A stretch of 64,000 bases of DNA from Geosiphon pyriformis uo1 (lineage: Eukaryota; Fungi; Glomeromycota): the NCBI GenBank assembly GCA_016748015.1, contig JAAOMT010000201.1:1-64000 (forward strand). Reading direction: 5' to 3'. The notes under the pieces were generated by a model. It was not told the origin of the DNA. It saw nothing but the letters and a program-made list of their open reading frames with translations, and searched no databases. Position 1 is the stretch's first letter; every line of letters starts with the position of its first letter. Made by a program: the position numbers and the translations under genes. Shown here one piece after another: positions 16,098 through 58,286 of the stretch.

Positions 16098-17000
16098 ATG
16101 TCCAAATTTGTCAAACCAATTTACAAATTCGAGATTGAAAAAATGAGACCTCAATTCCCTCTTAATCTTACCGCCAACGACTTGATGGCTAATGCCAAGA
16201 GAAGACTTGAAGTGACAGGGAAAGTTACAAAAATTCCTAACAGCTTTATGGCATACCGAATGGCAGTCAAAAAAAATCTTATTTTGAGCAAAAATATTCC
16301 TGGAATGCGAGAACTTTCAACAATTTCTGCCACTCTTTGGAAAACGGAACCGGAATGGGTTAAGGCGGAATATCAATCCCTTATGCGTGATGCACAAGCT
16401 CAACTTCATCTAATTGCCAATTTTAAATTACCATTGCAAATAATTCAATTTACCAATCAAATGCAAAAAAGCTTAGAGCCATCTTCTCGAAATAAGTTTG
16501 AATCTAGAAAAGGTTTTCCTCGATCTTACGATGACCGATCAAAGACTCGGTCGAATACAACAAATTCCTCTCCTCCAACTACACCAGAATCTTGGATAAA
16601 ATCCGATGATAATAGCTTTATTTATGAAAAGAGAAACCCACAAAGCAAATTTTTACTATTAAATGAGCCCGACATGGTTGAAAATATTCTGACTACTCCT
16701 TTTGACCTCGGGGTCAATACTGTGTTAGAAAGCGACATTTCTTTTGATTTTCATGAGGGTCAGGCTCAAAGAAATAACATTTTCAGCCAATTTTCGAACT
16801 CAAGACCTTTCACAGATATGGAAACCTTTAGAAATCCAGGTTTACTCCCCAATTTAAATAGCTCCGTTAATTTATTGGATTTTTGTCCAATTACCCCAGT
16901 TTTAGAAGAAATTTGCCTTGAAGATCGAGTGAAAAACTTAGAACATTTTTTTTATCACATGAATTTGGAAAAAGCAACTTTTATGAACTTTTTTCCTTAA
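16098..17000 (+). CDS. MATA-type HMG-box transcription factor (array copy 1)
   Basis: KIPNSFMAYRM...MRELSTISATLWKTEPEWVKAEYQSL HMG box; N-terminal RPQFPLNLTANDL; C-terminal LEDRVKNLE; intronless. Confidence 0.92.
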   Translation: MSKFVKPIYKFEIEKMRPQFPLNLTANDLMANAKRRLEVTGKVTKIPNSFMAYRMAVKKNLILSKNIPGMRELSTISATLWKTEPEWVKAEYQSLMRDAQAQLHLIANFKLPLQIIQFTNQMQKSLEPSSRNKFESRKGFPRSYDDRSKTRSNTTNSSPPTTPESWIKSDDNSFIYEKRNPQSKFLLLNEPDMVENILTTPFDLGVNTVLESDISFDFHEGQAQRNNIFSQFSNSRPFTDMETFRNPGLLPNLNSSVNLLDFCPITPVLEEICLEDRVKNLEHFFYHMNLEKATFMNFFP

Positions 17001-17560
17001 TTTAATAATTTTTTAGCAATTCTTAAACAAAGCGTTGAGGCTTTACATCATTCAAAGAATATTTCTTGACAATGTTAGCCAAGGAAAATATTAAAAATTA
17101 CATTTCCCTCATAAGCAAAATCCTGGTATTTTATAATATATAGCAAATATTAATAATAATAAAAATATTATGAAACAATATGACCTAAAAAAATGTTTTT
17201 TTCAAAAAAAAAATCTATAAACATTCATTGGAACAAGCATTATTTATATTGTAGATTTTTTGTTTAGTCAACAAATTTTTTCCTGAAAAAGCAAAGCTTC
17301 ATTCACGTGCCAAATTTACTTTAAAAGTGGCTTTTATGTAGTGCTAGCCTAATATATAGTCATTACATATGTGGATTAAGTCAAACTCGGTAAGCTAAAT
17401 TTGGTTTAAATAAACAGACATTACCTTTTAAGACTCGGTCTTAATATCCGATGTGCTTTACCTCATTAAAAATTTCAAAAAAAGCTTAGATTACAATTTC
17501 GAATGTCAAACATGCATTGCCAAGTGACACCGAAACTGATTTTTCTGTATAAACCATCCA

Positions 17561-17602
<42 letters not shown>

Positions 17603-17668
17603 CATTATTATGATGGAGGAAGGAATAATAATAATAATAACAACAACAACAACAACAAAAACAACAAC

Positions 17669-17703
<35 letters not shown>
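17561..17703. repeat. Compound (TAT)n/(AAT)n/(AAC)n microsatellite
   Basis: Visible directly; source of spurious ORF 17475-17726. Confidence 0.95.
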
Positions 17704-17706
<3 letters not shown>

Positions 17707-18899
17707 TCTTGAATTATAATATTCAATGAAAATTTTGGCTCAGAATAATAAAAAATATATCCTCTTTGATTTCCATTAAAATTTTGTATATACGAATAAA
17801 AGATAAATTAAAAAAACTTTTAACGTTAAATCCAATTTTTAGATACTTACCAAAGAGTTCTTAAAATTTCTCCAAGAGTAATATACTAAATATTAATTGA
17901 AAATCAATAATTTTTTTATTTTAAACTATAATTTGATATATTTTTGCATTAAGAAAGCTTCTTTTATTTTGATAAACTAAAATTTAAATCAATTTTTTAG
18001 TTTTCTCATTTCTTTAAAACATTGAACTAGTTTGGCTGTGTATAGTTTCCTTATAAGATGTATTTTTAATTGTGTTTGCATATGACAAATCTAGGGCCCA
18101 GATTTATAATTACCAATTTTTTAATGTGTTCATCGCAGATTATCAAATCAATTAGCCCGAAAAGATTTCTTTAATATTCGGTCACCAGAATAAATATCTG
18201 TTACAAAAATAGCAAAGCACATGGTAATTTCTTACTTAAAGCTAAAAATACTATCATTGCCATCTTTAGGAATTAGTCACACTTGTGATACTTTATTTGA
18301 GCTTCCTCTTTCGCTTGAAAGTAACAATCACTTTGGATTTTCAAGTTTATATAAACAAATGTTTAATTTTTCTGTTGTTATTTTATTCATCACATATCAC
18401 ATTTATTAAATAGTTTAACTTTCTATTTTTTTAAAAGCCATTTTTTTTTTTACAAAACTGATTCTATTTCAAAAAATAATAAAACATCGTTACATATGTT
18501 AATAAAATTTTGAATAAAATATATTGTTGGTGTCTAATAATCAAATATGACATTTTTTTAAATAAAAATATTAACAAATATTAACTTAATATATTTAAAT
18601 TTATTAAATACAATCTTATTTATTTAATATTCTGGTTAGTTTGTCTAGCCTTTCTTAAATTCCTTAAATTCATAATAATATTTATGTTCATAAATTTTTG
18701 GTGAGCTAATGAAAGCAATTGAAACACTTAATATTCTTGAAAAGAATTACAAAGGATATTTTGAGTGAAATAAGATAGGAGGCTGAAATTAAAATTTCAC
18801 AATAATTAACAATTTTCATAGTAAATTGAATGAATTTAAAATTGAGTGGTTTTTTATATAAAGGCATAAATAACTTAAAACATATCTTATTTGGAGTTG

Positions 18900-19568
18900 C
18901 TAAAGGTTATGATTAAACAAGATTGCACACTTGGCTTCAAGTATCGCAATTCTTTCTTGTAGCGAATTGGTTTTATAATAAATCCTAAGTTCTGGAAACC
19001 AGGAATTAATAATACTTTCAAGCAATACAGCGCGATTTTCAAGTTCAAATTCATTGGCATCGGTAATTATGGGATGATCTGGTATAGATGAAGCTTGAGA
19101 GATAGACAGTTCAGAGATATCAGACATGTATTCTGCCTTTACCGAGTTCGAAACTAAATCGCTGCATTCTAGCCAAGTAAATTTAAAACTATCCTGAGAG
19201 GATGTTTTAGTTTTGACAGTTTTGTTTGAACCAGGATCAGCCTTAACAAACTGAAAATGATTATTGTAGCGGATGAATTCATTAAATGACGTACTTGCTT
19301 CATGACTGAGTTTCTTATATTGTTTTTTAATCGAAGGAGTTTGAGATTTCCAACTTTTAGAGACAATTCCAGAGATTTCTCGTTGTTTTTTTATCCCATG
19401 CAGGCTCCCGGATTTTTTAAGTGACATTCTATATAGAAAAAATGCGTTGGGAATTTTTTTTTTTTCGCCATGTTTCTGAAAGTGATTGACCGCGTTAGAA
19501 ATTATCTCCTCCACAGTTAGATTCAGTGGATGTTCCGGCTTTTGAAATTACTGATTATCACTAGTCAT
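18900..19568 (-). pseudogene. MATA-type HMG-box gene (copy 2) with one early nonsense codon
   Basis: ATG at 19568 is in frame with ORF 18900-19514: MTSDNQ*FQKPEHPLNLTVEEII, TAA at 19550-19548. The rest is open, with HMG box KIPNAFFLYRM...ISGIVSKSWKSQTPSIKKQYKKL and two coil motifs. The ORF-track start is a GTG. Confidence 0.8.
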
Positions 19569-20442
19569 CGTAACTTTTATCGTGAAAAGAGTTTAAATTG
19601 ATTGTTTTTAAGAAAAACTAAACAATTTCCTGTGAAGAAAAGCGAGAGAATAAATGTGAGGCTTATTCTCTAATAAAAATACAAGCATCAAGGCTTCTTT
19701 TTGTACTTTTCAAACCATTTTCGGCTGTGGAAAACGCCCAAAAATTTTCGGTTTTCTTTAATGTGTTTAGCTAATCTTTTTAATTATTCTGGAAAATCAT
19801 TAGAAAAAAATCTTGCGATTAAAAAAGTTTTGAAATTGGATCATCAAGTGATTTTGTTTATAATGAAAATGAATGGCAAAAATTATATCACCAGACAATG
19901 TCGATCTTAAAAAAGTTAAGCCTCTGTCTCATTTTGTAGATGATAAAGAGTTTTGAAATTCGTTTGAAAATCTACATTGGGATGATCGTCCTAATTGGCA
20001 CTTTTTTGAATCAAATTATGCAATCAAAATATTTCTTGCAATTCAAAATTCAAACTGAACCTCCTTTTTTAGCAATAATATCATTTAAAAATGTTGGACT
20101 TGAATGCCAATAAAGTCAATTTGAAAGAGTAAAATCTTTATTTAGAATTCTATTGATATTATAAATTCTTAATTAATTGAAAAGACTATTTAAAATTTTT
20201 CATTCTTGATGTATGCAATATCCCGATTTGAACTTTTCGGATTTTTTGTGATAAAGAGTAAATAATTCTCCTGAAAATTTTTCAAAGGACTTAAACTTTT
20301 TGAATTTAAACTATGATCAATTGTAATGTTTATTTGGAGAACTCAAAAAGTTGAGAGGCTCGGGGAAATATCTCCAAATTATTTGAAAAATTTATGCACT
20401 TCTCAATTAAAAATGACAAAATCTAAGAGCATTGGATTCTAG

Positions 20443-20483
20443 AAAGAAAGAAAGAAGGAAAGAAAGAATGAATGAATGAATGA
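20443..20483. repeat. (GAAA)n(GAAT)n microsatellite
   Basis: Visible directly. Confidence 0.85.
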
Positions 20484-21382
20484 TATTGATATCAATAGAA
20501 TCTAAAATATGCCCATTTTTATTTCTAATTTATGAATTCAAGTATAATCTTTAATATGTGATGAATAATCTTCTTTTTGAAAAAAACTTAACACAAGAAA
20601 ATTTTCGATTTCTGTCGGATCAAAACATCAAAATTATGACCCAATGCATACCGCTAAAGAATTGATTTTACATCACAATTATTCGGGCATAAAACTGCGA
20701 CATATCTATCCATAAAAAATAAAAAAAGTTGATCATTGCTAATAAGAAGAAATGATACTCTTTTAAGCACCTAAAATTGGGTGCCGCTTTTACTGTGACC
20801 CGGGTACAAAAGGATAGTAAGGTTTTAAACTTCCCAGGATTGTAAATAGTTTTAAGTAGACAAACGCCAATGTCAGCCACATCTTCAGTTTTTTGTGAAA
20901 CATTCTCGCTTTTAGAAAAACCAATTACATATATAAAATCTTTTGAAGGGAAAAATTAGGTATTCATAATTAGGTTCTACATTTTGATCTGTTTACTATC
21001 CTTTTTATTCAGGTACATATTTAGATTTTTAAAAATGTGACACATTTTTTTCATTACCATTGGACTTATGCAAATTCATTCAAGTTTACTTTATCGAGAA
21101 ACTCTCTGTTTTTTTCGAACTAAAGCAATAAAGAAACGTCATGGACGTCCCCCAGATGTCTTGTTTCCCTTACAATAGAAATTGTTATCCATACACTTAA
21201 ACAATTAATAATTATTGCTTGTTTTTTTTTTAGATGGACAAGTTCTAGAATGAAAAAAAATTTAGTCCTCTTAGGACGTGTTTTTAAAGGTTCTAGATTA
21301 TTGATAATTATTGTAACCTAGCATATTTTTTATCGGGTATTTTGGTAAACTATCTTAGAAAAAAAAAGGAAATTTTATTCAT

Positions 21383-22099
21383 TCAATTGAAAGAATGAAA
21401 ATTCACGAGTAGTCTGGAAATTGTAAGCTCGAGGAGATACACTCTTTCTTTAATAGTGATTGGAATATTTTGGTCAAATTCAAAACTTTCTTGATTCAAA
21501 ATGTTTTTCACAATTTTTTCGAGAGATTCCACGCGGCTCTCAAGATGGAACCATGAGTTTTCAGGTTCATAATGTTCATTATTATAAAAATTTTGTGAAA
21601 TAATTGAATCAGGTTCGATTGATTTGACCATAGAATTGAAATTTGAAAGAAACGGTGTAGGAGCTAAATATAGCGAAATAAGATGTATTCTTTCTTCCTC
21701 ATCAACGTTACTATTGAAATTAACTGAAGAAAGAGGATAAAATTTGAGCCGTTGTAATGTATGAAATTTTTTCCAAATTTTTTCAAAAGAATTTCTGGCT
21801 TCCTTTGAAATATTTTCGTAATAAGATTTAACATGTTCTGGTTCTTTTTTCCAATGATTTGCTGCGTTTTGAGCTAGATGGCGCATATTATTATCCATGG
21901 TTGACTCGATTAAAAAATTTCTCAAATCCATCTTGTATATAAGAAACGCATTTGGAATTTTGGTGACTCTCCCAGTTTCATTTAATTTTTTTATTGCATT
22001 CTTCATTACCTTTTCCACTGTTATTAATGAAAAGGGTGGTCTTGAATATTCTGGCAGCACATGCAAATAATTCGAGGTTTCGTTAAGTAAATTGGCCAT
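21383..22099 (-). CDS. MATA-type HMG-box transcription factor (copy 3)
   Basis: KIPNAFLIYKM...MRHLAQNAANHWKKEPEHVKSYYENI; RPPFSLITVEKV; two coil motifs LESRVESLE and IKERVYLLE. Confidence 0.92.
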   Translation of the reverse strand: MANLLNETSNYLHVLPEYSRPPFSLITVEKVMKNAIKKLNETGRVTKIPNAFLIYKMDLRNFLIESTMDNNMRHLAQNAANHWKKEPEHVKSYYENISKEARNSFEKIWKKFHTLQRLKFYPLSSVNFNSNVDEEERIHLISLYLAPTPFLSNFNSMVKSIEPDSIISQNFYNNEHYEPENSWFHLESRVESLEKIVKNILNQESFEFDQNIPITIKERVYLLELTISRLLVNFHSFN

Positions 22100-24696
22100 T
22101 TCAAATGGTTGACTTACAGTGTGGTGACAAAAAAATTCTAAAGATCAACAGTCGAAAGTTACCCACATATAAAAACTTTTTTTTTTTTTTTAGCCAATTC
22201 GAATTCCATAAAATATACTTCATTTCCACTATTTCCAAAACAGAAATAATTTGCAACTTTGTATATATAGTTTACTTTAGAAATGAATCTATTGATTAAG
22301 AAACATAGCAAGCAATAGCTAATCTATTTCTGTAGTGAGGGAAAAAATAGGAAAAATTAAGTACAGAGTCTTTAATAATTATCACAAAAAGATTATGGGA
22401 CATGTATCGAGAAAAGTAGGTAGGCTGAAATATATTCATAAAAAAAAATTCCTTTTTGTCCCTATAAAAAATTGCTTCTAAACTAAATAAATGAGGTATA
22501 GAAATTTCATATCACACAATTGTTTGACATTCAAGATTATTTGAATATATGAAAAACCTACTAATTAATAATACGTCAAATGTTGACAATATTTTAAAAA
22601 AGAAACGTGTTAAATGGTCCAAATTTCGTCTTAATAAAAACTTATTTTCTGATTAAAGAGCATTTTAACTGTTTAAAAACACTGTTAAACATTACAAGGT
22701 ATCTTGCAAAACCAAAAGATCGTACAAAAATATTTGTGTGGGATGGTTTTTTATGAGGAGAAAAACTAGCTTATTTTTTTTATGCGTATTATGAATGCTA
22801 AGGGGAAGTTAATGGGATAATTGGCCGTTATTTAGTCCGGCTCTAAATCCCTTTATATAAGATTCCTCTTGGTGATAAAATTTCACTGATAAATTCTAAT
22901 TATAGCCGAAATGGTTGTGAATGACAAAAATGACAGACCTTTGATTGTGATCATCTCATGTAAATGAAAATGTTTGACATAAATCTCAAATTTTTAAGCG
23001 AAAAAATTCCTTTATTAGGGTAGATCTCAAGAAAAAAAACTTAAAACAAGGTGACAATATGAGTAAAGTTTTTAGTTTATTTAATTTTTGACAAAAGGGT
23101 GATAAATAAAATTTTTTACATTTATCGATGGAATTTTTAAGCCCGCTATGCATCATAGCTAAAAGTCGAATTCACAATATAAATTGAAAAAAAATTTGAA
23201 TAATTAGGTATTTGAAATCAGATTAAGGTAAAAAGTGCTATTAAAACCCTTATTTGTAACTTTAAACGAATTGGATGAGGTCACAAATATCCAATAAAAA
23301 AAAGGCTCACAAAGTTGTTCATAAAGTTATCCTTTTAAAACAAAATTAATAAATTCAAAATAATTTTCAAATCAGAAAAGAGAATAATAATAATAATAAT
23401 TGTATCTTGTTGAAAGAATTATTCTTGGGTTAAAGTATAAATAAGATGCAGGAAAATTTAAAAAGGCTTTTTTCTTGAAACCAAATCCGTCACTTGAAAA
23501 ACATGATTATTAAAATCCATAAAACGTAAGGTTCTTTTATATTCCTTTGAAAAAAAAAAAAAACTAATTTACTGAATCTTAAAAGAAAATCCGAAACAAT
23601 TGATTCACCCTAAGATTTCAACAACATTTGACAATTTTTTTTAATAGTACATTTTTCTTAATTTTAATCTAATATATAAAGAAAAATCATAATTCATAAT
23701 TTCTGAGGTTTCATATACTTCATATTTGATGTCTACGTTATAATATTAACTATTTCTAAAAATTAAAAGTTTTGCTCATAAATTTTTTTTTCAACATTAA
23801 CTGAGATTAAATTATCATAAGCATTTTTAGCATTTCAATCAGATTTCATAAAGGCTTAGAGAATACTGGATTCTAAAATTTTTATTTATCATTATCTATG
23901 GCACATTTTAAATCTTATTTTTTTTTTTTTAAAAAAAAAAAAGAATTTTGTATCTTGCTAGTGATTTCAAATAAGGGTAATTGATGTGTTTTATTTAATA
24001 AATTGAATCTTTGAGGCTGAAAAAAACGTAGTACTGTTTTGAATCTTTAGGCGAAAACTTCTTATTTTGGTTATTTTTAACAGAAAAGCGATTAGCTTAT
24101 AAATCCTCGCAAAATATAAACCTTAAGCTCACAGCCTCACCTACCATTTTTGTATGTTTTTTAATCTTGATGTTTCATTTTAACTTGACAGGTCTAACTA
24201 TTTTAACTGGATTGATCTTCTCTCTTCAAGCATCTAGTAAAATATTATTCTTGGAATTTTCACAAAGTTATTCGTGTTTAAAAAGTTTTCCTTTCAAGAT
24301 GAAATTAAAAGCTCGCGTGTCCAACTTGTTTTTGATGATCATACGGTAATTTTGAATTCTATGGCAGTGCTTTCTTAAAGCGGAAAAAATAATATACAAT
24401 CAAAAGCAAAGCCTTTTTAAGGGAAAATGACCCAAATTACTCAAACGGTAGATGTATCTGCATTTGTTTGAAAGTCATTTTCAATAATAAACATCAAGTT
24501 ATAAATTTACAGTTTATATTGACTTTTGAAAATTCCCTCACTCAATATGCGAGACTTTAATATATTTGAGTGTAAATTTTTGGAAATTTGTAAGCGAGAA
24601 AGGGGGCACTAATTCATTTTTTCTTCTTTTAATCTGTTTTTGAATTTATTATTAAGGTTTTAGTTTTCTATCTCTTAAAATATAGGTTTTGACTAT

Positions 24697-25725
24697 TTAC
24701 ATTTGATCAATAATTTTGTTGCAGCCTTCAGTAATTAAACTTGCTACAAGGCATTCTAATACTTTGATTCTTTGCTCTAAATTTGAATTTTGTTTGACCG
24801 TGTTTTTCATATTTGGTATACGGTCAGACTTTAGGTTATTTGCCAACACAGCAAGTAATTGGGTAATCGAAGATTTAGAGACTGAAGGATTGATTATTGG
24901 TGTGGTAACAGGTGAAGGTAGAGTATTTGAGGAAGTCGTCTGCCTTGGGAATTCTGCAAAATCGAGATCAGGAGAAACCGTCAAATATGAATGACTAAAT
25001 GAGGGTGTAGTTGAAGTTGATGATGGGCCTTGTGAAACTTGTTCGTTGAAAGCTGGGATGAAATCCCATGTTTCTTGCAATGTGGAATTAGAAGGATTGA
25101 TTTCCCACACTTCCGGCAACGGATTGTCAAAAGATTCAATTGTAAAATTTTGGATAATATGGGTCGTCGTAGGTGATTCGATAGGGCTTGATGGCAATTC
25201 TTTATTTGAAAAAGTTTCTAATAATCCAGGATTGTCGTTCCACGGTTGTTGTTGTAATGGACTTACAGTTACATCATTTATATATTCAGGAGAAAGGGAT
25301 GAATCATCAAGTGATTGAGGTTTTTCAAAAGAATTTGATGGTAGCGAAGTTTCGTAGTTGTTGTATCCCACTATTGTTGACTGTGTAGGAACACTTGAAG
25401 TAAAAAATGGTAAGATATTATACTGATTTGGGATTTGATGAAAGAAGTTTTGAGCCTCGAGCGCAATTTCATTATATTTTGCTTTAACTAATTGCGATTC
25501 ACGAGCCCAATACTTTTGTGCTAACGTACTAAAATTTCGAACATAGGGGTTTTCCTTTTGAATTGCCATTTGATAGGCACTAAAAGCAGTAAGAATTTGA
25601 CCGGTTTCCAACGCTTTGGATGCAATCTCTTGAGAAGTGATAATAGGAGGGAATTTTGGTTTCAATGAATCAGAATGAGCCGCGCTCAAATTTCTGAGAG
25701 TAGGTTTAGCAGGATTTTTTAGCAT
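24697..25725 (-). CDS. Degenerate MATA-type HMG-box protein (copy 4)
   Basis: KPKFPPIITSQEI motif; shortened box ILTAFSAYQMAIQKENPYVRNFSTLAQKYWARESQLVKAKYNEI; long S/P/T-rich tail; LEQRIKVLE. Probable start is ATG 25725; the ORF extends to 25794 through an A-rich tract. Confidence 0.85.
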   Translation of the reverse strand: MLKNPAKPTLRNLSAAHSDSLKPKFPPIITSQEIASKALETGQILTAFSAYQMAIQKENPYVRNFSTLAQKYWARESQLVKAKYNEIALEAQNFFHQIPNQYNILPFFTSSVPTQSTIVGYNNYETSLPSNSFEKPQSLDDSSLSPEYINDVTVSPLQQQPWNDNPGLLETFSNKELPSSPIESPTTTHIIQNFTIESFDNPLPEVWEINPSNSTLQETWDFIPAFNEQVSQGPSSTSTTPSFSHSYLTVSPDLDFAEFPRQTTSSNTLPSPVTTPIINPSVSKSSITQLLAVLANNLKSDRIPNMKNTVKQNSNLEQRIKVLECLVASLITEGCNKIIDQM

Positions 25726-28700: not shown

Positions 28701-31335
28701 TATTTAATTATCAAAGTATTTCTCCATCTTTTAATTGATATTATTTTTGAATTGCATAATAATTTCGACTTTTTTATTTCGATTTTTCATTTTATCAATA
28801 TATCACATATTAAACCAATAGTGAAAATATAAAGTAATGAAAAAATTGGGTTATATTATTTTTAGATAAAATATGACAATAAATAAAGCTCAAGATTATT
28901 TTGGTGTAGTCATATTATTCTATTGGCTCAAAGACCAAAATTCTCAAGCTTATTTTGTAAATTATACTTAGAATTTCTTAGTATTTGTGAAATTTTGGTA
29001 TTTATCTATTATAAAATTTATAAAGAAGTTACAATATTTGATTTAATAATTAAATTTACAAAACTTTTTATAAAAAAGTGAAGAAAATATTAAAAAGGTT
29101 AAAAAGTCAAAATTTTAATTACAACATTCAAAAACAAAGTAAAAATATATTCAAAATATATTTGAAATTTCAAAGATTTTTAGCACAAGAATTTGTACTT
29201 TAAATTATTAATTTTTAAGTCGATCCCTAAAAGTTTTTATACAAGTTGAAAGTTTTTAACTTGTAATTTGACAAATTCTGAATTTTTATGGGTCTATAGA
29301 GTTACAACAATAAACTAATAGAAAAAGCAATTAATTCTATAAAGGCAAGAATTTTGTTGATTTTAAGAATTCTCCATTTATTTTAAGGTTGAAAATGAAT
29401 GTCTTTCATTGTACAACGTAAGCGATAAATATTGCTTTAATCAGTTTTTCTTAACCATAGGTAGATATAAACTAAGCTAAGATTCGTTATATTTAAAAAT
29501 TTTAAAAAGTACAAACTTTTTTCCATATATTAGAAACTTAAAAATATATTTTAGGCCAAAAAACCAATCTTTTGAAAAGAGTTCAACTTTGTGACCAAAT
29601 ATATTGCAAAATTACTAAATTAACAATTGCTGAAAGATTAAAATTCTTAAGTAAATTTCGCTTAGATTTTTAAATGAAATAATTTATTTAGGAAATTCAA
29701 GATTTTTCAAGATTTCATTAATTCAATCCAGACCAAAATCTTTTGGTTTTCATTTAAATTCTTCGAATTTGATATTAAAGAAAATAATCCTTCAAATCGA
29801 ACCCAGTATTCAACAAAACGTGCACCATTTTCAATTTTTATTAATAATAGAAGACACTTTCTCTTGAAATAAACATAAAAAAAAATTAAACAGGGTATCA
29901 ATCTGAATTGCTAAGCATTCAGACTTAACGTTTTGCCCCATTTTAAAAATTCTAATACTTTAAATCTGTTTCAAAGAACGAAAAATTGGATTTTTTTAGG
30001 AAAGTGGATTTGGAAAAATATTCAAACACTTGAAAAAATTATATATGTTCACAAAAACTAAATAATATTTTTAAAAATCAAGAGATCATTTTTTTATTTT
30101 CAAAATATATAACTTACCACACAATATTAATTTAATTTTTTGTGGAGAATTTTGGCACACTAGTAGTCATAAATAAATAAAATTATGACTGCCTTTCAAT
30201 AGGGAATTTCATAATTCAGCAGCTCCTAAAAGGAGTTTTGCACCTGATCTATTTTGGAATGGATCTTCAATAAATTTCAAGTTAATTTTCTTTATACAAG
30301 TTTCTAAAATTTAAAATCATTAATCAAAATTAAGGCTCAAAGAACCTCTTATAAGAAAATCTATAATTTATTTGTGTCTTGTTTGAGATTAGCGCAAAGC
30401 GTAATAATTTTCATTTTCATTTTCCAGTGTCAAATCTGGAAAGGTTCATTGAGGACAACTAAAAATACGTGCACCGAAATTCCTAAAAAAGTTACAGATT
30501 TTCAATATCTAACAAACTAAAATGAATTTTTAAATTAATATTAATAAGAAATGGTCGTCGGACACAAAGGTTTCAAGTTCAGCTTTTTTAAAATAATAAT
30601 AATAAATTTTTTGACCTACTCAGGCCTGATAAATAGCTTGACATTTCTAAACCTACCTTTTTTAGCTAACAATCTTTTTCAATTTAATCAAGGACGATTT
30701 TTGTGTTACTATTGATATCTGTATTTTTGATTAGGTATTCCATCTATAATTAGTATTTCTTATTTAGATAATAATGATTCTATTCTCTTTAAGTATGTTA
30801 TTAGTAATCCAAGATTAAAATATTCATACCATCGATTCTTTATGAGGATTATTAAATACCCAGTTTATATTTCAATATTTTAATTAAATTGTTTTAGATT
30901 GGAAAACGGTAGGACGAGTGCTTTTGCCCCTCAAAATGAGGTTTAATATCAAAAAGAGGCATAAATCGTTACTTAATATAATCTTAATTTCAAATTCTTA
31001 ATATGTCTAGAATTCATAGGAAAGTCAAGTTTATTTATTCTTAGATCTTTTGAAAAAAATTTACACTTATATTTAATATTTTAGTAAAAACATAAAATAA
31101 TATATATATCAATAGTTATTTTCGATAAATCTTAATATTTTCTTAAAAACCTATAATCTATAAAAAAATAATTTTTAAATATTTTATGATCCATAAAAAT
31201 ATTTTCTAAATTTAAGATTTTGAGATATTTTGTTTTTACGACCTCAAATTTTTTCTGAAAATATTGCTTTGTTTTTTTCAGCTGGTTTGGGAAAAGAGAT
31301 GAAATGATGATATCAAGTCATAGGAAATGTGCCTT

Positions 31336-32253
31336 TCACGCCCGATTGTGCCCTAAAATTAATGCAGCAACTAATTGCTCAAGGGCCACAATACGATTCT
31401 CAAGATTTTCTTTGACAATGTTGCTTAACCGCTGAGCAATTAAAATTTCATTCATATTCAGACTGTTTACGTTTGAAGAAGTTGTCAAAGTGTGACATTC
31501 TGGAAGATAGTTTTCAATGTTCATGTCAGAGGGGGAACAACTTGTTTCCGTTAGAATTGGAAAAAAATTTGTATTATTCTCGGAGATTGGAGAAAAAGGA
31601 TTATTGCAGGAGTCGTCTTCGAAAAAGGGGATAAAGTTTTCTGATAAATCGGGTTGGGGAAAGTAAAAGGTGTCCTTGGGTAGAGAAATTTGTGATTGAG
31701 CAGGGCTTGGTAATTCTAATTCCGAAGAATCATCTTGGTTGAAAACAGGTGATAAGTTTAAAAATTCTTCATTTCCTGGTATTGACTCATTGTGTAATGA
31801 GCTGGGGATTTCAAATTCTTGACTCTCAAATGATGAAATCGATAAGGAGCTTGGTGAATGCTCGTTTGGATTCTGTTCCGAGGGCGTTTGCTGTTGTTTA
31901 TTATTAATCTCTGTTGAAATAACTCTCTGACAATATTTGTCGAACAAGATCTTGGCATCATGTATAAGTCGTCGATACTTTGCTTTGACATTCTCGGGCT
32001 CTTGTATCCATAAATTACCAGCAATAGTCGATAAATCACGCATATTTGGGTAATAATCACTGACTGCCAATTCCTTTTGAAGAGCCATTCGATAGGCTAA
32101 GAATGCATTTGGTGTTTTCGAAAGTTTTCCAGTTTGGCGAAATTTTTCCACAGCATTGGCCATCAATTCTTCGGAAGTAAGGGTTGGAGGAAATTTTGGT
32201 TTGATCATCGTGAACGTTAAATTATCATTAATATTGAAAAAATTTTCAACCAT
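31336..32253 (-). CDS. MATA-type HMG-box transcription factor (copy 5)
   Basis: KPKFPPTLTSEEL; KTPNAFLAYRM...MRDLSTIAGNLWIQEPENVKAKYRRL; acidic S/P/F-rich tail; LENRIVALE. Confidence 0.93.
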   Translation of the reverse strand: MVENFFNINDNLTFTMIKPKFPPTLTSEELMANAVEKFRQTGKLSKTPNAFLAYRMALQKELAVSDYYPNMRDLSTIAGNLWIQEPENVKAKYRRLIHDAKILFDKYCQRVISTEINNKQQQTPSEQNPNEHSPSSLSISSFESQEFEIPSSLHNESIPGNEEFLNLSPVFNQDDSSELELPSPAQSQISLPKDTFYFPQPDLSENFIPFFEDDSCNNPFSPISENNTNFFPILTETSCSPSDMNIENYLPECHTLTTSSNVNSLNMNEILIAQRLSNIVKENLENRIVALEQLVAALILGHNRA

Positions 32254-35200
32254 TCATAAATATCGGCTGCGAATTGGAGAATCCAGTCAAAATTATTTTC
32301 CTGATTATCAAACAGATAACGAAAAAAAAAACGGGTGATTTTCAAGAAACTTACCAGCCTTGAAAAATATCTCAAAAAGCGATCTATTTTCAATGAGCAA
32401 TCTTGGACTGACTGCCTTTCTTACTATTAAAACGAGTAATATTTTTGAAAAAGATTCTTGGGAAAACATCTCTTTATATATAATTTGTAAATTTAGTAGA
32501 TCTAGTAATTAAAGCGTTTGAAAGATATAAGAACGGTAAAAGCGATCCATTATCAGGGTGTTTCATTGTGTTGCACAAACCTTTACCATTATGTTCTAGT
32601 CGCGCATCTAATAATGCAAGCATCTTCTTTGCAAATCTATAGACCGGAAACTCATATTGTCTTGACCTAGATAAAACGTTTTCTTTTTCGTTGGATTATG
32701 AATCTGAATTCGAACCATATATAAATGTAAGCTAAGGTCATTTCTTTTTTGGATGGAGCAGTTTTTAGTCAAAGACCTAATTAATTCACTTTGCTAAAAT
32801 AAATAGTTAAGCTTAGAATTTACCATTGTCCCATTGTTGATTGTTTTTCAAAGCACAACATAGGTGAGATAAAACCGGTAAAAGATCGCCCAGAAGCTCT
32901 ACATTCTGGCGTTGACTCAGAACTCTTGAAATTGAGCACAGCATGTCTCGGGGCAAATTTTTATTTATTGTTATCATGAAAATGGTGAATATGAAGGCGA
33001 TCGATAAAATTTTTTATGAGGTTAAAATCATCAATTTTTTGATATTTTTTTAATATCAATTGAAATGCCAAGAATAAGATGAAAACAAAAAAATTCTCAT
33101 TTCAAGAAAATTTCCATCATGAAAACATATAATCCGGAATACAGGGTCCTAGATTCCCCTTTTTTTTATAAATTTAGGAAAGAATTTTTTTTTTTTCTAA
33201 AATTTTGTTGATCATAGCTATTAAATGTTCGTTATTTAACGCTCCATAATTGTCCATGATATGCAAATTGTAAAAATAGTATTTCCAGAAAAGCGTTGAA
33301 GATCATGAGATCTTGATTATGAACCCTGCAGCCTATTTATATTGTCGAAAAAGGCTATGGATTAATATTAAAATGTTTCCAGTCCCTTTTTTTCTTGATT
33401 TTAATACTTTGCATAGAATGACTAAAATTCTTCTATAATTCGTTTAGGTGGTGACATTTTAGTAATATCTTTGAGTATTATATTGGTGTGCTCAAATTTA
33501 ATTAAAAGTAGGCGTTAATTCGAATAGAAGGTTCTTTGAAATCCATTATTTTTTTGTGAAACAAACATAAGTAATATCGACCATATATAGGTATCATAAT
33601 AAGAATATATCTAATGCACAATTGTTTACATCATCTACTGTAATTGACGAAAACCAGGACCAAAAAAATTGTTCTGCTAAGCAGCACTCGATTGATAATT
33701 TTTGAACTCCATGATAAGAATGAGTCACAATAATTCATATGCATTAACTTTCCATTGAACTTTCATTACGCATTACACGTGATTTTTGATAAAAAACGCG
33801 TTCTTGATCAAGGAAGTCTCTAATTTTAGAAAGCCAATGAAGTATTCGAACTCTTATCAATATTTTTTTAAAAAAAATGAGTAAATGATCTTTGAGTTTT
33901 TATATATAACATGATATTACAAAGGAAAAACAATTTAAACGTTGAAAATTTTAAGAAAAAGTGTTTGCTGATTTTTATATTTCTATAAATTCTAAATTCT
34001 CAATGTGAACTGTTTTCTTCAACCTATTATTGTGAATTTTACATTTTGGACTATTAAAAATTTTTAGTTCATTTGTTTAGATTTCTTGCATGTATGGCAA
34101 ATTTTATTATTATTGTCAAGAGCATAGCTAACACCCTATTTTACTCAAGTAATCAGCTTTCTTTGACAAATTTTTTTTTTGTTTAATTTTCACAAATCTT
34201 ATCAACTAAAATCAAAAAAAATCAAAAGAGGGTAATAAAAAATTTGAATTCAAAAGTTCAGGGGAATCTTTATATATATTATTTCGGTGATCTTAAAAGA
34301 GGATATTGAGAAGCCACATGTTTCTTGTGATCGGTGATACCTGAGAATTTATGGGATTCAATGATAAATTGAAAAGGAATTGTTTAAGGAATTAAGTTTG
34401 GGTATTTTCTAAAAATAGGATGCTTATCTTCTCGGAAATTTGACAAATATAATTTTTAATAAAGTAAGAATTGCAATATTATAGCTATTTTAACACCTTG
34501 TCCACTTAAAGTCTTCAATTTTTTTTTTAATTCATAAAAAATCTTTTTTTATATGGGAAATCTTTTTTTTATATTTGTGCTGACTAAAAATAATGATAAT
34601 GGTTCAACAGCAGGTCTGTATTTGTTAGGTTCATTATTTTCCCAAAGAAATGTACTTTCTAAAACAAGTGAAATCGACATTGATTTTAACGCGATATCAA
34701 ATAATTTATCCTTGGTATACACAGGAAAACCGATAAACAACCTCGCATGGATTTGTAATCTGTACATGTGGCTATTGAAGTATACCTGGTTTGAGTGGTT
34801 GATAGAGCTGGTCGCGGTAAATACCGTTCTGCATGATCAAATCTAAAATAATGATCTGTGTATTACATTTCTATTACTCTTAAATTGGTTTCTACAATGA
34901 AAATAAACCAATAAAACCTTTTGCACTTTTTCTCTAGTTTTTTTAATGGTTTTCAGGGAAATCTATGTGGTTCTATTTATAAAGATACAAAAATTTAGTT
35001 TAGCTGACCTCAAGTTCAATATTTGAATTATTAACACCCTATAAGAAAAAATGTCAAAAAAGTAAAATTTAAAATGATCGATCTTCATATTGTCACACCA
35101 TGAAGCGATCGATCTTATAGTCCTTGAGCAAATTATTAAATGAGGATTCAGAAGATCCAAAAACTGATTATGCAAAGAACATTTCTGAGGACCAAAAATT

Positions 35201-37116
35201 ACTTCTTATCATTTTGGATCAAACCTAGATAGCTAATCAATATCGATCTATGAAAAAATATCCGAAAACTAACTTATCAGTTTTTGCTATTTAGGTATGC
35301 AAGGATGTGCTTTTATAAGGCAGTGTAAATTATTTTATAATTGAATATTTGTAACATGGTAAATAAAACTTTATTTTAAATTCTTTAAATGCTGCAAAAA
35401 ATAAAACAATCTTATTGAACGATGGTAAATTAGCAAAAACTTTTAAAGCAAATAAACTTTATCAAGAGCAGATACACTTTATCAAAAGCAAAAATACAAT
35501 TATCATCATGAGCCGAAATATATCTTATTAAATTTTAAGCTTTGCATTATTTTTTTCACATTATGAATTATCGAAATATTGACTTTTCATAAGCAGCAGA
35601 ACGTCAGTATTAAAAAAAATTTCATTTATAATTTTCTATCTTTAATTTCTTAATGCTTCATTTAAACAAGTAAATGCATATTTTCATCATTTTGAACATG
35701 ATCCCCTTAATCAATTGATGTTAGGCTTTGAATTATAAGAATATAAATGTATACAAGATTGTGAAAGATTTTGGCAAAATTAATATTCTCAGGTATCATA
35801 ACAAAAAAGAACTTGGGGGGGGGGGTTTTTTACATGATGAAAGATATAAATGTATATGCTATTTATGATATTGAATATTTACATTTTTGAATTTTGTTAA
35901 TTGATTGAATTCATTTTATTCAAGAGCTTAAGAAAAATTAAAAGGGAAAAAAGTTAATTTTGGAATTTTATTTTAAACTCAAAATATTTTATCATCAGAA
36001 CCCATTATTATTTGACAGATTTTATGAGGTAGATATTATAAAAACGGAAATATATAACCATTCTAAAAATAAATTCAAATCAATAAATCTTGTTATTTCA
36101 AGAGATTAATTAGTACTTGACTTTTTTGTTTTATTCAATTTATCACATATTTCTTGAATAATCTTGTCAACATTAAAACAATGAAAAGTGTTACTTTTGA
36201 AGTATACCTGACTTTTTGAGTTTTTCCCTCATGAAAGTTAACATTGCCATCAAGGGAAATCTCTTATTTGATTCCATATAGACTCGACACCAATAAACGA
36301 TACGTTATATGATTTAAGTTTGTAAAACTCGGAAATTAATTTTATGCATGTGAATTGTTGTTTCTTTAAGTAATCTGTTTTTAGCATTTCCAAAATATAG
36401 CGTCCCATTAGGAGATATCTTATTGTCATGATCAATTTATAGAAAAACGGTTACATTGTTTACTTGGAAAAAAATGCCTCATATGGCCAAACGAAAAGCA
36501 TTTTTAATAAAATTGAAAATTCTTAAAGTCTTTATCCAAAATTTATTACAAACTTATTGAGCTTTTTAAGATTCTGTGTAATTTATACGCTATTCTAAGA
36601 TAACCTTTTTTTTGTTTTAAATATAATTTTTATTATTCAACAAGAAAATTGATTCATCATCCCATCAACTCCGTAGCAATCACTTGTTCATTTGCTAAAG
36701 TAAAAACAGCGATTTCGGTTATTTAATAAATGACCAAAACTGAAGATGTGGCTACTTCCTTTTTGGTAGATGTCAACAAGATAACCTTACTAAGATTGGT
36801 ACACAAATTAAAATGATGATGATCTCTATTATGTTCAGGAAAGGGGCAGAAGGGAGATGACTTTCAAAAATGTTTGAAAGCGAAACCAAAAAATTTTCTA
36901 TTAAAACAATAAATTTTTCCATTAAAACAATAAATTTTTCCTTCCTACTTCTTTATTGCTTGATGAAGACCTTCTATCATTAAAAGTTAAACTTTTTGGT
37001 TTCGGATTCTACAAAGAACCTGACTCTCCACGACCCGAATTTATTTTATCAATAATTTTAAACACATCGTCAAATCTTTTCCCCAAATATTATCTCAATT
37101 GACACGTTAATAATTG

Positions 37117-37923
37117 ATGAATGACCAAAGGTTTCAACGGTTTCTGAAGGTTGCACGCCCCAAATTCCCACCTAATTTTTCAATTGAAGAATTATTAGAA
37201 AAGTCTTTCAATGTTTTGGAACGCTTTGAAAAAGTTACAAAAGTTCCGAACAGTTGGTTTGTATATCGAATGGTCATCTTGAAAGAATTAAAAACCGCTG
37301 GCTATTCCAAACGGAGAAATATGCGAGAATTTTCAAAAGTTGTTTCACAACTTTGGAAAACTGAGCCAAACCATGTGAAAAAGCATTACAAAAATTTATA
37401 TGACGAAGCGAAAAAGACTTATGCCGAAAAATGTCAAATATTACATCCCTACGTTTTATTTGTAGACGAAAGAACAACTAAACCTCAACAAGAAGTTAAT
37501 CCACAATCAGCTCTTAAAAAAAATGAGGATGATTTAATCGTTATTTTACCAGAACCTGATCAAACTGTCTTCTTTGATTTGAATGATTCCGAAGGAAATT
37601 TTTCGCACGCAGGAGACCCTGAAAATTATTCAACCGCCTTTGCTGAAAATTCTCAAGTTAAATTTAATCAAAATTTTGAGAAACTAAATCCTTCACTCAG
37701 CATTTTGAATCTTCAACAGGAAATTCAAATAATAGAAACATCAATAGTTCAATTTTCAAATTCAATAACTCTTGAAGAGCCTCCTCATTATATAATCGAA
37801 AATAATGACTTAATAATGTCCCATTTACAAAATCTTCCAATTGCCCCATTTGAAAAAATAGTGAATCATGAATTAATAATGGCGCATCTCATCAGAAATG
37901 AACAATACAAAATTTATTTTTAA
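37117..37923 (+). CDS. MATA-type HMG-box transcription factor (copy 6)
   Basis: RPKFPPNFSIEEL; KVPNSWFVYRM...MREFSKVVSQLWKTEPNHVKKHYKNL; ATG at 37117. Confidence 0.92.
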   Translation: MNDQRFQRFLKVARPKFPPNFSIEELLEKSFNVLERFEKVTKVPNSWFVYRMVILKELKTAGYSKRRNMREFSKVVSQLWKTEPNHVKKHYKNLYDEAKKTYAEKCQILHPYVLFVDERTTKPQQEVNPQSALKKNEDDLIVILPEPDQTVFFDLNDSEGNFSHAGDPENYSTAFAENSQVKFNQNFEKLNPSLSILNLQQEIQIIETSIVQFSNSITLEEPPHYIIENNDLIMSHLQNLPIAPFEKIVNHELIMAHLIRNEQYKIYF

Positions 37924-38192
37924 ATAATAGTCAAACATTAAAGTCTAAACTTTGAAATTATAGTATGGCAAATTCACAAATGTATTATGAAGTAGATAGC
38001 GTTTCCAAAACTCTATAACTAAAACTCCTTTTAAGATATATAATTTTATGCTTAGATGAATAAAAATTATTTTTAGATATTTGAGAAGAAACGAAAAAAT
38101 TGCTTGTTAAAAATGAGGCTTAATTATAACATAGCTTATTAAAGAAAAAGTTTGTTAGATGTTGCCTAATAATTAAACCAGCATACTTGAAA

Positions 38193-38970
38193 TCAGATGT
38201 CAAGATAGGAAATTCTTAAAAGTTGGCCGGAAATTAATTTATACATGTAGTTTAGAAATCTCTGTTTATCATTAAAGATTTCCAACAAAAAAATACCTTG
38301 TTCAAGCAACAACTTTCTTTGACAATTTGCTTTTGAGATTAACGAATTTCTTCTAATTAATTCTTCATTTGGAATTTCCCGAGAAAATTCTTCCAGAGCT
38401 TGGGGCTTCGATTGGAAGACTTGATGATAATTTTTATTAGGAAAGCTAGGTGATAGCAAATTAGAATCGGCTGGAAACCTTCGCATGAATCTAATAGATT
38501 TTATACTTTTAAGATTGATTACTTGCTTGACTTTTAGATTATGAAAGTCATTTTTTTTAGATTGAATATTTTGGTCTCTTTGTTATGATTTGCTGCCATA
38601 TAGATTGCGTTCTGGTTTGAAGATGAAGATGGACGACATGTAAAGGGTGAAATTTTTGCCAAATGCTTTCATAAAAATTATTTGCCTCAAGTGATAATGA
38701 TTTATATTTATTTTTTACAAATTCTGGCTCTATTTTCCAAAGAGCTGAAGCGGTGGCAGAAAGCACAGGCATATCCAATTTTTTATGATTTTCTTACAAT
38801 TTTTTCTGAATTGTCATTCGATAAATCATAAAGGCGTTTGGAATCTTTATGATTTTTCCGTTTTTCTCCAGTTTTGTGATAGTATTTGAACTTATTTCTT
38901 CCTTTGTAATGATTGTAGGAAATGGGGGTCTAAAATTAAATTTCTCAGGTTCAGGAGGACCTCAAGACAT
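38193..38970 (-). pseudogene. MATA-type HMG-box pseudogene (copy 7)
   Basis: From ATG 38970: MS*GPPEPEKFNFRPPFPTIITKEEI...KIPNAFMIYRMTIQKKL*ENHKKLDMPVLSATASALWKIEPEFVKNKYKSL. Stops at 38964-62 and 38796-94. The tail (ORF 38193-38486, with LEQGIFLLE) is in another frame. Confidence 0.9.
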
Positions 38971-39425: not shown

Positions 39426-40129
39426 CACTCGGCGGAAAAAAGTCATGGGACACTTTACAATTAAAGAATGGAATGAAGTTATTTGGAGTGATGAATCAAA
39501 ATTTTGTCTTTTTTCTGATGGACCTCAAAAAGTTGGGAGCTAGAAAGGAACAAGATTTAACAAAGAAAATTTATCACCAACTGTAAATCATGCTGGAGGA
39601 AAAATTATGGTTTGGGAATGTTTTTGTAGAACTGGATTAGGTCTTTTAGTTTTAGTAGAAGGCATATTAAATAGGTTTGGATATATTGATCTTTTACCAA
39701 AACATTTATTACCATGGATTAATTATAAATTTTATCATAAACATTATTTATTTTAACAAGATAATGCCCCAATTCATACAACTAAAGATGTTAAGACTTG
39801 GATGGCTCAAAAACATCTCAATTTACTTTCTAAATGGCCAGCACAATCACCCGATTTGAATCCAATAGAGCATTTATGGGATTATTTACAAAAACAACTC
39901 AAAAAACGAAATCCGCGTCCCGAAAATAATCACAAATTACTCCTCGCGTTACAAGAAGAATGGCAAGCAATACCACGAAATATCTATATAAATTTAGTTA
40001 CTAGTGTATCTAGACGTATTGAAGAATGTATTAGAAAAGAGGGTGGACCAACTAGTTATTAAGTATTAAATAAAATAAAAAGTTTTTAAAGAAATAATAA
40101 AGTGTCCCATGACTTTTTTCCGCCGAGTG
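39426..40129 (+). mobile_element. Non-autonomous, internally deleted Tc1/IS630-mariner DNA transposon (704 bp)
   Basis: Perfect 32-bp TIRs (CACTCGGCGGAAAAAAGTCATGGGACACTTTA at 39426-39457; reverse complement at 40098-40129) and TA target duplications (39424-25, 40130-31). One reading frame carries WSDESKF, IMVWECF, QDNAPIH and WPAQSPDLNPIEHLW, with stops at 39541 and 39754. Confidence 0.97.
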
Positions 40130-43900: not shown

Positions 43901-44554
43901 NNNNNNNNNNNNNNNNNNNNNNNNNNNNNNNNNNNNNNNNNNNNNNNNNNNNNNNNNNNNNNNNNNNNNNNNNNNNNNNNNNNNNNNNNNNNNNNNNNNN
44001 NNNNNNNNNNNNNNNNNNNNNNNNNNNNNNNNNNNNNNNNNNNNNNNNNNNNNNNNNNNNNNNNNNNNNNNNNNNNNNNNNNNNNNNNNNNNNNNNNNNN
44101 NNNNNNNNNNNNNNNNNNNNNNNNNNNNNNNNNNNNNNNNNNNNNNNNNNNNNNNNNNNNNNNNNNNNNNNNNNNNNNNNNNNNNNNNNNNNNNNNNNNN
44201 NNNNNNNNNNNNNNNNNNNNNNNNNNNNTAATATTTTTTTCGATTTGAAATCGAAATTTAATTGGTTTTATTTTCTTTCAGGTCTTGTATTGGAAAAAAG
44301 TTGTAACGTGGGATATCATTCCTCTAATGACTCTAATTCTCAGCGCCGTTCTCCTTCTCAGCAATATATTGCACAAAATATTTTTCTTAATCCAACAGCT
44401 GAAAAAACCAAAACACCAGAAAGTCCCAAATTTTCTTAAGGACGAAGAGGAGTTCAACAATTTAAAAAATAAAAAACTTAATGCGAATGCCTTTGATCTT
44501 GAGCCTTCGGATTCCTCCACAGTTATTGCAGATCACAAATCTGGCTCGTTATGA
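40947..44554 (+). pseudogene. Decayed multi-exon gene for a signal-peptide + SbsA/Big_5 Ig-like + multi-TM membrane protein
   Basis: Signal peptide (LLRLLLFITLLSIF); LIRPNGKV..IPEFNFC; exon at ~42460-42810 with ITFNKAV...YYVSFDPNFVKD..GEP..WEF (Big_5-like by eye); hydrophobic exons at 43.4-44.4 kb; GT-AG introns. Stops at 41127, 41381 and 42530, plus frameshifts. Spans an N gap. Confidence 0.7.
43888..44228. other. Assembly gap (N run)
   Basis: Run of N. Confidence 1.
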
Positions 44555-57751: not shown

Positions 57752-58286
57752 TTTGTTTTGATTTTAAAATTCTTCTTTTTTTTTTTTAATGAGGTGTTTC
57801 AAAAGAATTTTATAGCTTTGAGAAAAATTTTCACTTTTGAAATTATTATTTTTTAAAAAGTCAACAAGAGTTTTATAGTTTCTCAAGACTAGTAAAGTTC
57901 TAATATTTATATTAATTTTTATTTATTTAATGAATTTATAATCTGACACCATTGCTCACGGGAAACTACGGATTTTATGAAAACCCTTTGCCAATTGTTA
58001 CCCATAGCTTTTGATAGCGACCATTCTTTGTTAACCTTTTAAGGTTTACTTTGGCCTTAAATGAAACAACAAAAGCCCCGCGCGTTTAGTGTTTCAGAAT
58101 AGGAATCAGGTACCTATTTACCTCGCATATATTTTTACAAGTTATTTGAAAGGTTAAGCCAAGAATTGGTTGTAATACAAAAACCCTAATATCAGCCACG
58201 ACTCGGAGTGACTTCCCCACGAGAAAATTGATAATCTTTGAGAATAAAAGTTCAATTCTATACATTTTAGGTGATGGATATCTATC

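Follow-up and report, generated by a model that had tools for sequence, protein, structure and literature searches.

Several transcription factors of the HMG-box class are known to act together. SoxD proteins (Sox5/6/13) and HMG20A/HMG20B combine an HMG box with a coiled coil that mediates homo- and heterodimerization of paralogs, and SoxE proteins also dimerize. In bZIP proteins, the choice of partner rests on variable charges at the heptad positions e and g and on polar residues at a. Arbuscular mycorrhizal fungi possess very large expansions of mating-type-like HMG-box genes, and, to our knowledge, sex has never been observed in these fungi. Short coiled coils of other proteins carry a motif for trimerization, Arg(g)-h(a)-x-x-h(d)-Glu(e), in which Arg bridges the Glu(e') five residues further on in the neighbouring chain and, in GCN4p-M3, additionally the Glu two residues before it on the neighbouring chain; the motif is found mostly in parallel trimers, with certain dimers having it too, and acts in short coiled coils as a strong determinant of trimers (PMC3653964). 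Here, we describe a short C-terminal element with this residue pattern in an array of HMG-box genes of Geosiphon pyriformis. The array lies in a window of 64,000 nucleotides (positions 1 to 64,000 of contig JAAOMT010000201.1, assembly GCA_016748015.1). The motif is real, conserved and unannotated, and we consider it probable, from its sequence features, that it is an amphipathic helix forming a parallel, in-register coiled coil between chains, so tethering two or three HMG boxes.

The window is AT-rich (21-34% G+C; ~28% G+C in the genome), its proteins carry G9A89_ locus tags, and the assembly comprises 128.3 Mb in 792 contigs. It holds nine HMG-box open reading frames (ORFs), all of which look intronless, and one broken copy, pseudogene 7 (Table 1). 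The label MATA_HMG, CDD subclass cd01389, is borrowed for these genes from the literature on HMG expansions in Glomeromycotina, and may fit them. The ORFs have in common a pre-box segment, K/R-P-x-F-P-P-x-L-T-x-E-E-L, followed by the HMG box, and eight of the nine match the Pfam profile HMG_box PF00505 with E-values of 1.7e-8 to 2.6e-4. The gathering score of this profile is reached by copies 2, 3, 6 and 8, with copies 1, 5 and 9 slightly under it, and the Pfam search gave no HMG_box match for copy 4.

Beyond the HMG box, the tails of the window copies are unalignable. An initial annotation of this DNA had seen these tails converge on a shared motif near the C-terminus, and this is borne out: the tails between box and motif do not align, and every nine-mer that it quoted is present at its position, those of copies 2-5 and of the pseudogene being on the minus strand, which the annotation had omitted to say. 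In a six-frame scan of the window with a hidden Markov model (HMM) of the motif, each of the top six matches (22.7-28.1 bits) sat at the 3' end of an HMG ORF, whereas elsewhere no match exceeded 7.0 bits. The motif is present in five of the nine window ORFs. For copies 6, 8 and 9, the window motif scan found neither the motif nor a nearby exon able to supply one.

A profile built from the window copies finds at least 107 family matches in the Geosiphon genome, and our census covers 50 of these loci, with 55 distinct ORFs and one split gene. Across these 56 paralogs, the pattern h-x-x-[RK]-h-x-x-h-E occurs 32 times in the post-box tails of 20 proteins. All instances lie at most 59 residues from the C-terminus and form two clusters, 18-31 and 40-59 residues from the end; 13 paralogs carry two helices, with starts 22-39 residues apart and mostly ~30. 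A tree of the boxes alone places every Geosiphon carrier in one clade of 32 rows (support 96/92), where the motif is kept by ~21 of 30 inner members and lost in at least six lineages. The box branch lengths of 0.4-2 changes per site indicate that the Geosiphon paralogs are old. Genome scans with the module profiles, in which 17 and 26 candidates were examined, recovered only HMG-family members (the training genes and, for the two-helix profile, two extra single-helix genes), a weak indication that the module may be confined to HMG genes. One HMG gene, L020:1426-2437 (+), is split into two ORFs, with the box at 1426-1821 and a two-helix tail at 1838-2437, owing to either an intron or a frameshift. 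Together with L023 and L009, it makes up a triplet on contig C348 that our census includes.

The distribution of the motif extends beyond Geosiphon. With the family profile, an exhaustive HMMER search recovered 1335 relatives at E-values of up to 0.001. Among the best 150 of these, 121 proteins do not come from the Geosiphon loci of our census, and 31 of the 121 have the motif in their last 75 residues, where 0.76 would be expected. The named carriers belong to Ambispora gerdemannii, A. leptoticha, Funneliformis mosseae, F. caledonium, F. geosporum, Glomus cerebriforme, Diversispora epigaea and Paraglomus brasilianum, and span four orders, the Archaeosporales, Glomerales, Diversisporales and Paraglomerales. 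When 139 boxes are placed in a tree, 47 of 51 carriers come together in one group of 66 rows with a Shimodaira-Hasegawa-like approximate likelihood ratio test (SH-aLRT) support of 82, which consists of a Glomerales group, a two-helix group and a third, CxxC-bearing group (support 96 for each of the latter two). All seven rows of the Glomerales group end in a LEQRIQILEQQMALFYQ-like sequence, and the Glomerales carriers seen are all single-helix. Between the two Ambispora species, the box is ~80% identical and the middle is rich in insertions and deletions, and the terminal helices are retained. The initial annotation had made its proposal depend on conservation in orthologs, and the motif is indeed kept in orthologs and across the four orders. 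A word search with the tail of protein P0018 matched only the query itself and is uninformative on other carriers, and an ESM Atlas look-up of the tail gave no usable match. To judge from the tree and the tails, one subfamily of HMG-box regulators in Glomeromycotina most likely inherited the element from its ancestor.

It could be argued that such strings are a functionless by-product of an AT-rich, Leu/Glu/Asn/Ile-rich composition or of recent duplication, given the low G+C content of the genome and the low complexity of the tails. We find this scarcely credible. Shuffling the same Geosiphon tails gives an expectation of 0.85 instances and a maximum of 6 in 2000 shuffles, against the 32 observed, and the excess of carriers among the other relatives is of the same kind; moreover, the C-terminal position is fixed, the paralogs are old, and four orders have kept the motif.

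The 32 Geosiphon instances give the consensus N(-1)-L1-E2-[E/N/D]3-R4-V5-x-x-L8-E9-x-L11-[I/V]12-x-x-L15-[L/F/I]16. LIVMF residues make up 84-100% at positions 1(d), 5(a), 8(d), 12(a) and 15(d), which yields a d-a-d-a-d heptad register. Position 4 (g) is Arg in 29 instances and Lys in three, position 9 (e) is Glu in all 32, position 8 is Leu in 31, and position 5 is Val, Ile, Leu or Met; Arg/Lys at 4 and Glu at 9 are imposed by the search pattern, and the HMM scan gives the same residues. At position 2 (e), Glu is the most frequent residue (15/32; D/E 53%). A helix N-cap (N/S/T/D) stands at -1 in 22 of the 32, and Pro and Gly are absent from positions 1-10, save one at position 6, and increase after position 17, with Pro/Gly at 19, so that the N-cap and these breakers define a helix of ~16-18 residues. 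Positions 11 (g) and 16 (e) are also hydrophobic and widen the seam in the second half, and no Asn or Lys occurs at the a positions of the core. The instances conform to the Arg(g)-h(a)-x-x-h(d)-Glu(e) pattern; at ~2.3 heptads, they fall short of the four or more heptads of a bZIP-type zipper. Outside the positions that define the search, identity among orthologs and close paralogs is 54% at a/d/e/g and 35% at b/c/f (p 0.02, the pairs being partly non-independent).

In the arrangement that we favour, the same helices of two or three chains would pack parallel and in register. L1, V5, L8, I/V12 and L15 would form the core at a and d, widened by L11 and L/F16, and Arg4 (g) would bridge Glu9 and Glu2 (e) on the neighbouring helix. 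Long flexible linkers would then tether two or three HMG boxes and permit cooperative binding of clustered sites. We read the element as a coiled coil because its heptad register is exact, because the conserved g-to-e' charge pair has no role inside a single helix, because the tail profiles resemble solved parallel coiled coils exclusively, and because the interface face is better conserved than the outer face. The same reading is favoured because the sister group has a canonical zipper with Cys in its core, because the invariant Arg has decayed in pseudogene 7, and because the helices have been retained in tails that are otherwise unalignable. From these features, we infer self-association, parallel orientation and an effect on DNA binding. 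These HMG regulators would then probably work in twos or threes, whereas regulators of this kind are usually taken to work singly, and, as probable dimers or trimers on DNA, they would be expected to have paired or clustered sites as targets.

Several points weigh against an intermolecular coiled coil. For a coiled coil to be stable in isolation, one helix of 2.3 heptads is short, and the a/d pattern also satisfies the consensus of a class-3 nuclear export signal (NES), as it does in most zippers. Against the PDB, the two-helix profile reaches E-values of only 1e-3, and composition alone draws coiled-coil profiles to one another. A model of the tail monomer, with a predicted template modelling score (pTM) of 0.63, equally fits an intramolecular helical hairpin. 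Finally, four of the nine window ORFs and roughly one-third of the clade have lost the motif, so that some members can do without it.

Sequence profiles of the tails point to known coiled coils. The best PDB matches of the two-helix module profile are LENRVAVLEN, with which the CREB zipper begins (E 0.0017), LENRVARLEKLV of a GCN4 variant, and LESRVSALE and FESRISTLE of the trimeric coiled coil of reovirus sigma-1. The full-length family profile matches only a GCN4 fusion, through the tail. The PDB matches of the tail profiles are parallel, homomeric coiled coils only. An AlphaFold2 model of copy 3, based on a family alignment of 23 sequences, has a mean predicted local distance difference test score (pLDDT) of 76, with a well-predicted box (83-97), a disordered linker (43-60) and two helices at residues 182-203 (76-91) and 216-237 (82-90), exactly at the motifs. 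The 65-residue tail by itself is likewise predicted as two helices (mean pLDDT 81). As AlphaFold2 was run on monomers only, these models show helicity, not association. In Foldseek, the model of whole copy 3 recovered the HMG box alone, which aligned to SOX, SRY, LEF1 and HMGB with target-normalised template modelling (TM) scores of 0.6-0.79 and root-mean-square deviations of 1.5-2.6 A; the E-values exceeded 0.1 because the query was the whole protein. The modelled box thus shows the L-shaped fold of three helices that is typical of the class.

These models bear on a second explanation, in which no oligomer forms and the two helices pack within one chain as a hairpin cap, serving either to regulate the HMG box in cis or simply to make the protein more stable. 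The near-constant spacing between the helices would suit such a cap, as would the confidence of both helices in the monomer model of the tail. Yet the single-helix members (copies 1, 4 and 5 and all Glomerales seen) keep the motif without a partner helix, and antiparallel packing would put Glu(e) against Glu(e') and Arg(g) against Arg(g'). Monomer runs of AlphaFold2 also tend to fold any two amphipathic helices together, and a Foldseek search of the PDB with the hairpin model returned only meaningless matches, with E above 3. We therefore regard a hairpin as quite unlikely.

Alternatively, the helix could be a docking motif for another conserved partner, such as a co-activator, co-repressor or transcription factor, or a class-3 NES read by an exportin. 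Linear docking motifs usually take just this form, a short amphipathic helix that closes a disordered tail, the NES consensus Phi-xx-Phi-xxx-Phi-xx-Phi is matched by the hydrophobic positions 5, 8, 12 and 15, and the single helix is, as noted above, short for a stable coiled coil. However, the invariant Arg(g)/Glu(e) pair, from i to i+5, is what interhelical bridges need and is unexplained by NES rules, and the outer face (b, c, f) is poorly conserved, whereas docking helices usually keep their whole contact face. Docking also accounts poorly for a sister group with a CxxC form and a 3.5-heptad zipper, which are canonical coiled coils, and for PDB matches that are all homomeric coiled coils. 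Of the alternatives, docking or export appears to us unlikely, although it deserves more credit than a hairpin.

The coiled-coil oligomerization proposed in the initial annotation is supported, then, by register, PDB matches, predicted helices and conservation, and the oligomers would be dimers or trimers. According to the Harbury a/d rules, Val or Ile at a and Leu at d favour dimers or dimer-trimer mixtures, and without a buried Asn they give no decision. The R-h-x-x-h-E string had been put forward as specifying trimers; it matches the published definition of the motif, but a trimer does not follow from it, since some dimers have it too (PMC3653964).

The third, CxxC-bearing group of the tree presents a sister form of the element. 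The tails of Geosiphon L017, L018, L025 and L028, and those of many Ambispora proteins, finish with C-x-x-C-x3-[IV]-x2-L-x2-[RK]-[VI]-x2-L-E-x-K-L-x2-L-T, a 3.5-heptad zipper in which, counting back from the zipper, both Cys fall at a and d of the preceding heptad. Cys at these positions is sensible only if the helices meet in register. A profile built from the CxxC form finds in the PDB, with E down to 2e-6, coiled coils designed to be parallel and three-stranded (Coil-VaLd, CoilSer and their Cys-substituted metal-binding versions), and also HY5 and GCN4. By analogy with the designed coils, two or three CxxC chains could together form a thiolate metal site. The element has three forms, namely a pair of short helices ~30 residues apart, a single short helix, and the 3.5-heptad CxxC zipper. 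A near-identical trio on contig C404 (L033:1962-2621, L037:1935-2621 and L038:1935-2621, all +) belongs to a more distant HMG clade and has coiled-coil-like, Leu/Lys/Glu-rich tails without the LExR motif; this distinct tail suggests that the family gained or reshaped its C-terminal helices on more than one occasion.

A combinatorial system, in which array members would choose partners as bZIP proteins do, had also been proposed, and is not supported. Residues E2, R4 and E9, which face the partner, are invariant, and the core is aliphatic throughout. As neither the e/g charges nor the aliphatic core vary, the helices would be self-complementary and mutually compatible; mixing of paralogs is possible, and would be promiscuous, with no basis for selectivity seen in the sequences. 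One may imagine that the more than 20 helix-bearing paralogs constitute a network of mixed oligomers that combines HMG boxes on clustered AACAATG-type sites and controls a cryptic mating or nuclear-recognition programme, with, for example, a two-helix protein giving two strands and a single-helix protein the third, CxxC proteins acting as metal locks, and members like copy 4 as Id-like poisons. We hold this to be a long shot. In a genome-wide count made to look for dimer sites, 698 direct AACAATG pairs lie within 30 bp, compared with 132 for a reversed control, in a list dominated by dispersed repeat families, and AACAATG is not enriched in the window (25 vs 17.4 +/- 3.7). A recurrent form of the pair has the words 20-21 bp apart, about two turns of DNA, in a count that repeat families confound.

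Individual copies show how the element and the box may part company. The box of copy 4 has suffered deletions, K-I-P-N-A-F has become Q-I-L-T-A-F and Y-R has become Y-Q, and its branch in the box tree is long (2.3); its ORF is intact. On this sequence evidence, copy 4 could act in an Id-like manner, entering oligomers yet not binding DNA. Copy 6 is the sister, in the tree, of L021, a two-helix gene outside the window; its tail contains two similar amphipathic segments without the motif (…DLIMSHLQNL… and …ELIMAHLIRN…), and these may be decayed remnants of the two helices of L021. In copy 2, an upstream ATG is followed by six codons and an in-frame TAA (window 19548-19568, -), the HMG ORF continues past this stop, and the public annotation starts at an internal Met within the box (P0009, 175 aa). 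Copy 2 may be a recent pseudogene, an assembly error or a gene with a start further downstream. The box of copy 1 clusters with the Ambispora leptoticha protein P0031.

Elsewhere in the window, a 488-codon ORF upstream of the HMG array (6912-8375, -) encodes the N and C domains of an arrestin, with Pfam E-values of 7.8e-8 and 2e-9. Adjoining pseudogene 7, an ORF fragment at 39757-40059 (+) resembles, as judged by eye, the C-terminal part of a Tc1/mariner-type DDE transposase. A run of N, either a mask or a gap, lies at ~43880-44230 amid an ORF-rich stretch.

Table 1. Positions of the HMG-box copies, their C-terminal motifs and related features (window positions unless a locus or contig is given)
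Feature	Position	Strand	Basis or remark
Copy 1, HMG-box gene, 300 aa, one C-terminal helix	16098-17000	+	Pfam E 1.3e-4
Copy 1, LEDRVKNLE	16917-16943	+	Sequence reading
Copy 1, motif helix	16908-16970	+	Motif HMM 28.1 bits, top match in window
Copy 2, HMG-box ORF, two helices	18903-19547	-	Pfam E 7.4e-6
Copy 2, helix 1, LENRAVLLE	19017-19043	-	Helix 18990-19055, 23.6 bits
Copy 2, helix 2, LQERIAILE	18936-18962	-	Helix 18909-18974, 25.3 bits
Copy 3, HMG-box ORF, 238 aa, two helices	21386-22099	-	Pfam E 1.1e-5
Copy 3, helix 1 (residues 182-203), LESRVESLE	21518-21544	-	Helix 21491-21556, 24.4 bits
Copy 3, helix 2 (residues 216-237), IKERVYLLE	21428-21454	-	Helix 21389-21454, pattern match
Copy 4, 365 aa, degenerate HMG box, intact motif helix	24700-25794	-	Family alignment, box deletions
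Copy 4, LEQRIKVLE	24754-24780	-	Helix 24727-24792, 27.0 bits, second best in window
Copy 5, HMG-box ORF, 305 aa, one helix	31339-32253	-	Pfam E 4.2e-5
Copy 5, LENRIVALE	31378-31404	-	Helix 31354-31413, 22.7 bits
Copy 6, HMG-box ORF without motif	37114-37920	+	Pfam; motif scan
Pseudogene 7, HMG box with stops and frameshift, decayed motif	38196-38934	-	Sequence reading
Pseudogene 7, LEQGIFLLE, degenerate, invariant Arg lost	38280-38306	-	Sequence reading
Copy 8, HMG-box ORF without motif	50099-50983	-	Pfam; motif scan
Copy 9, HMG-box ORF without motif	56969-57763	-	Pfam; motif scan
CxxC-form tail	L025:1117-1236	-	Sometimes extra Cys (CxxC-form tails)
CxxC-form tail	L028:2329-2448	+	As above
CxxC-form tail	L017:1168-1287	-	As above
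CxxC-form tails, proteins P0027-P0055			As above
AACAATG pair, example	C26:1860-1887		Genome-wide word count
AACAATG pair, example	C340:206405-206431		Genome-wide word count
AACAATG pair, example	C546:121726-121754		Genome-wide word count

HMG factors with coiled coils are already known, as in SoxD and HMG20; what appears to be new here is the short, conserved C-terminal element. We found no description of it in the literature searched, which lacked most subscription papers, including the main MATA_HMG paper. The element offers a handle for experiments with tail peptides and with Arg/Glu or Leu-to-Pro mutants. It also gives a means of dividing the HMG family into functional classes, namely those with two helices, one helix, a CxxC zipper or none, and supplies natural proteins in which to study very short R-hxxhE coiled coils and Cys placed in the core of a coiled coil.

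Among the systems to which the element can be compared, SoxD and HMG20 resemble its hosts in architecture. They are animal proteins, and the SoxD coil is long and N-terminal to the box, whereas the element described here belongs to a lineage-specific fungal expansion and is very short, often doubled and C-terminal. In view of the SoxD and HMG20A/B coils and the SoxE dimers, the initial annotation's picture of SOX boxes as monomers on DNA was incomplete. Gal4 carries a similar string after its zinc cluster and forms a short coiled-coil dimer. A likeness to Zn2Cys6 (Gal4-type) factors was considered and rejected, with no PF00172 match in the window ORFs and no Gal4-family chain among the PDB matches at E up to 10.

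The bZIP zippers (CREB/ATF1 with LENRVAVLEN, HY5 and GCN4) are the closest PDB matches in sequence and join two DNA-binding units through a parallel, in-register coil. The HMG tails differ from them in having no basic region before the helix (at most 9% basic residues at -7 to -1), an HMG box 100-200 residues upstream, only ~2.3 heptads in the LExR form, and no variable e/g charges for the choice of partner; Pfam matches to the bZIP family were absent among the window ORFs. The designed metal-binding three-stranded coils CoilSer/GRAND-CoilSer and AQ-C16C19 are among the best PDB matches of the CxxC form and, like it, place Cys at a and d. Metal binding by the natural CxxC proteins is, in contrast to the designed coils, purely a prediction, and the window copies are without CxxC.

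The coiled coils of coronin-1, ccbeta and GCN4p-M3 (Kammerer 2005, as described in PMC3653964) have the same residue pattern and register as the HMG tails, including the extra Glu before Arg. In contrast to such trimers, the host of the element is a DNA-binding factor with an oligomeric state that is predicted only, and the motif is also present in dimers such as CREB/ATF1. Coronins nonetheless resemble the HMG tails in their layout, with a short C-terminal coil placed behind a flexible region.

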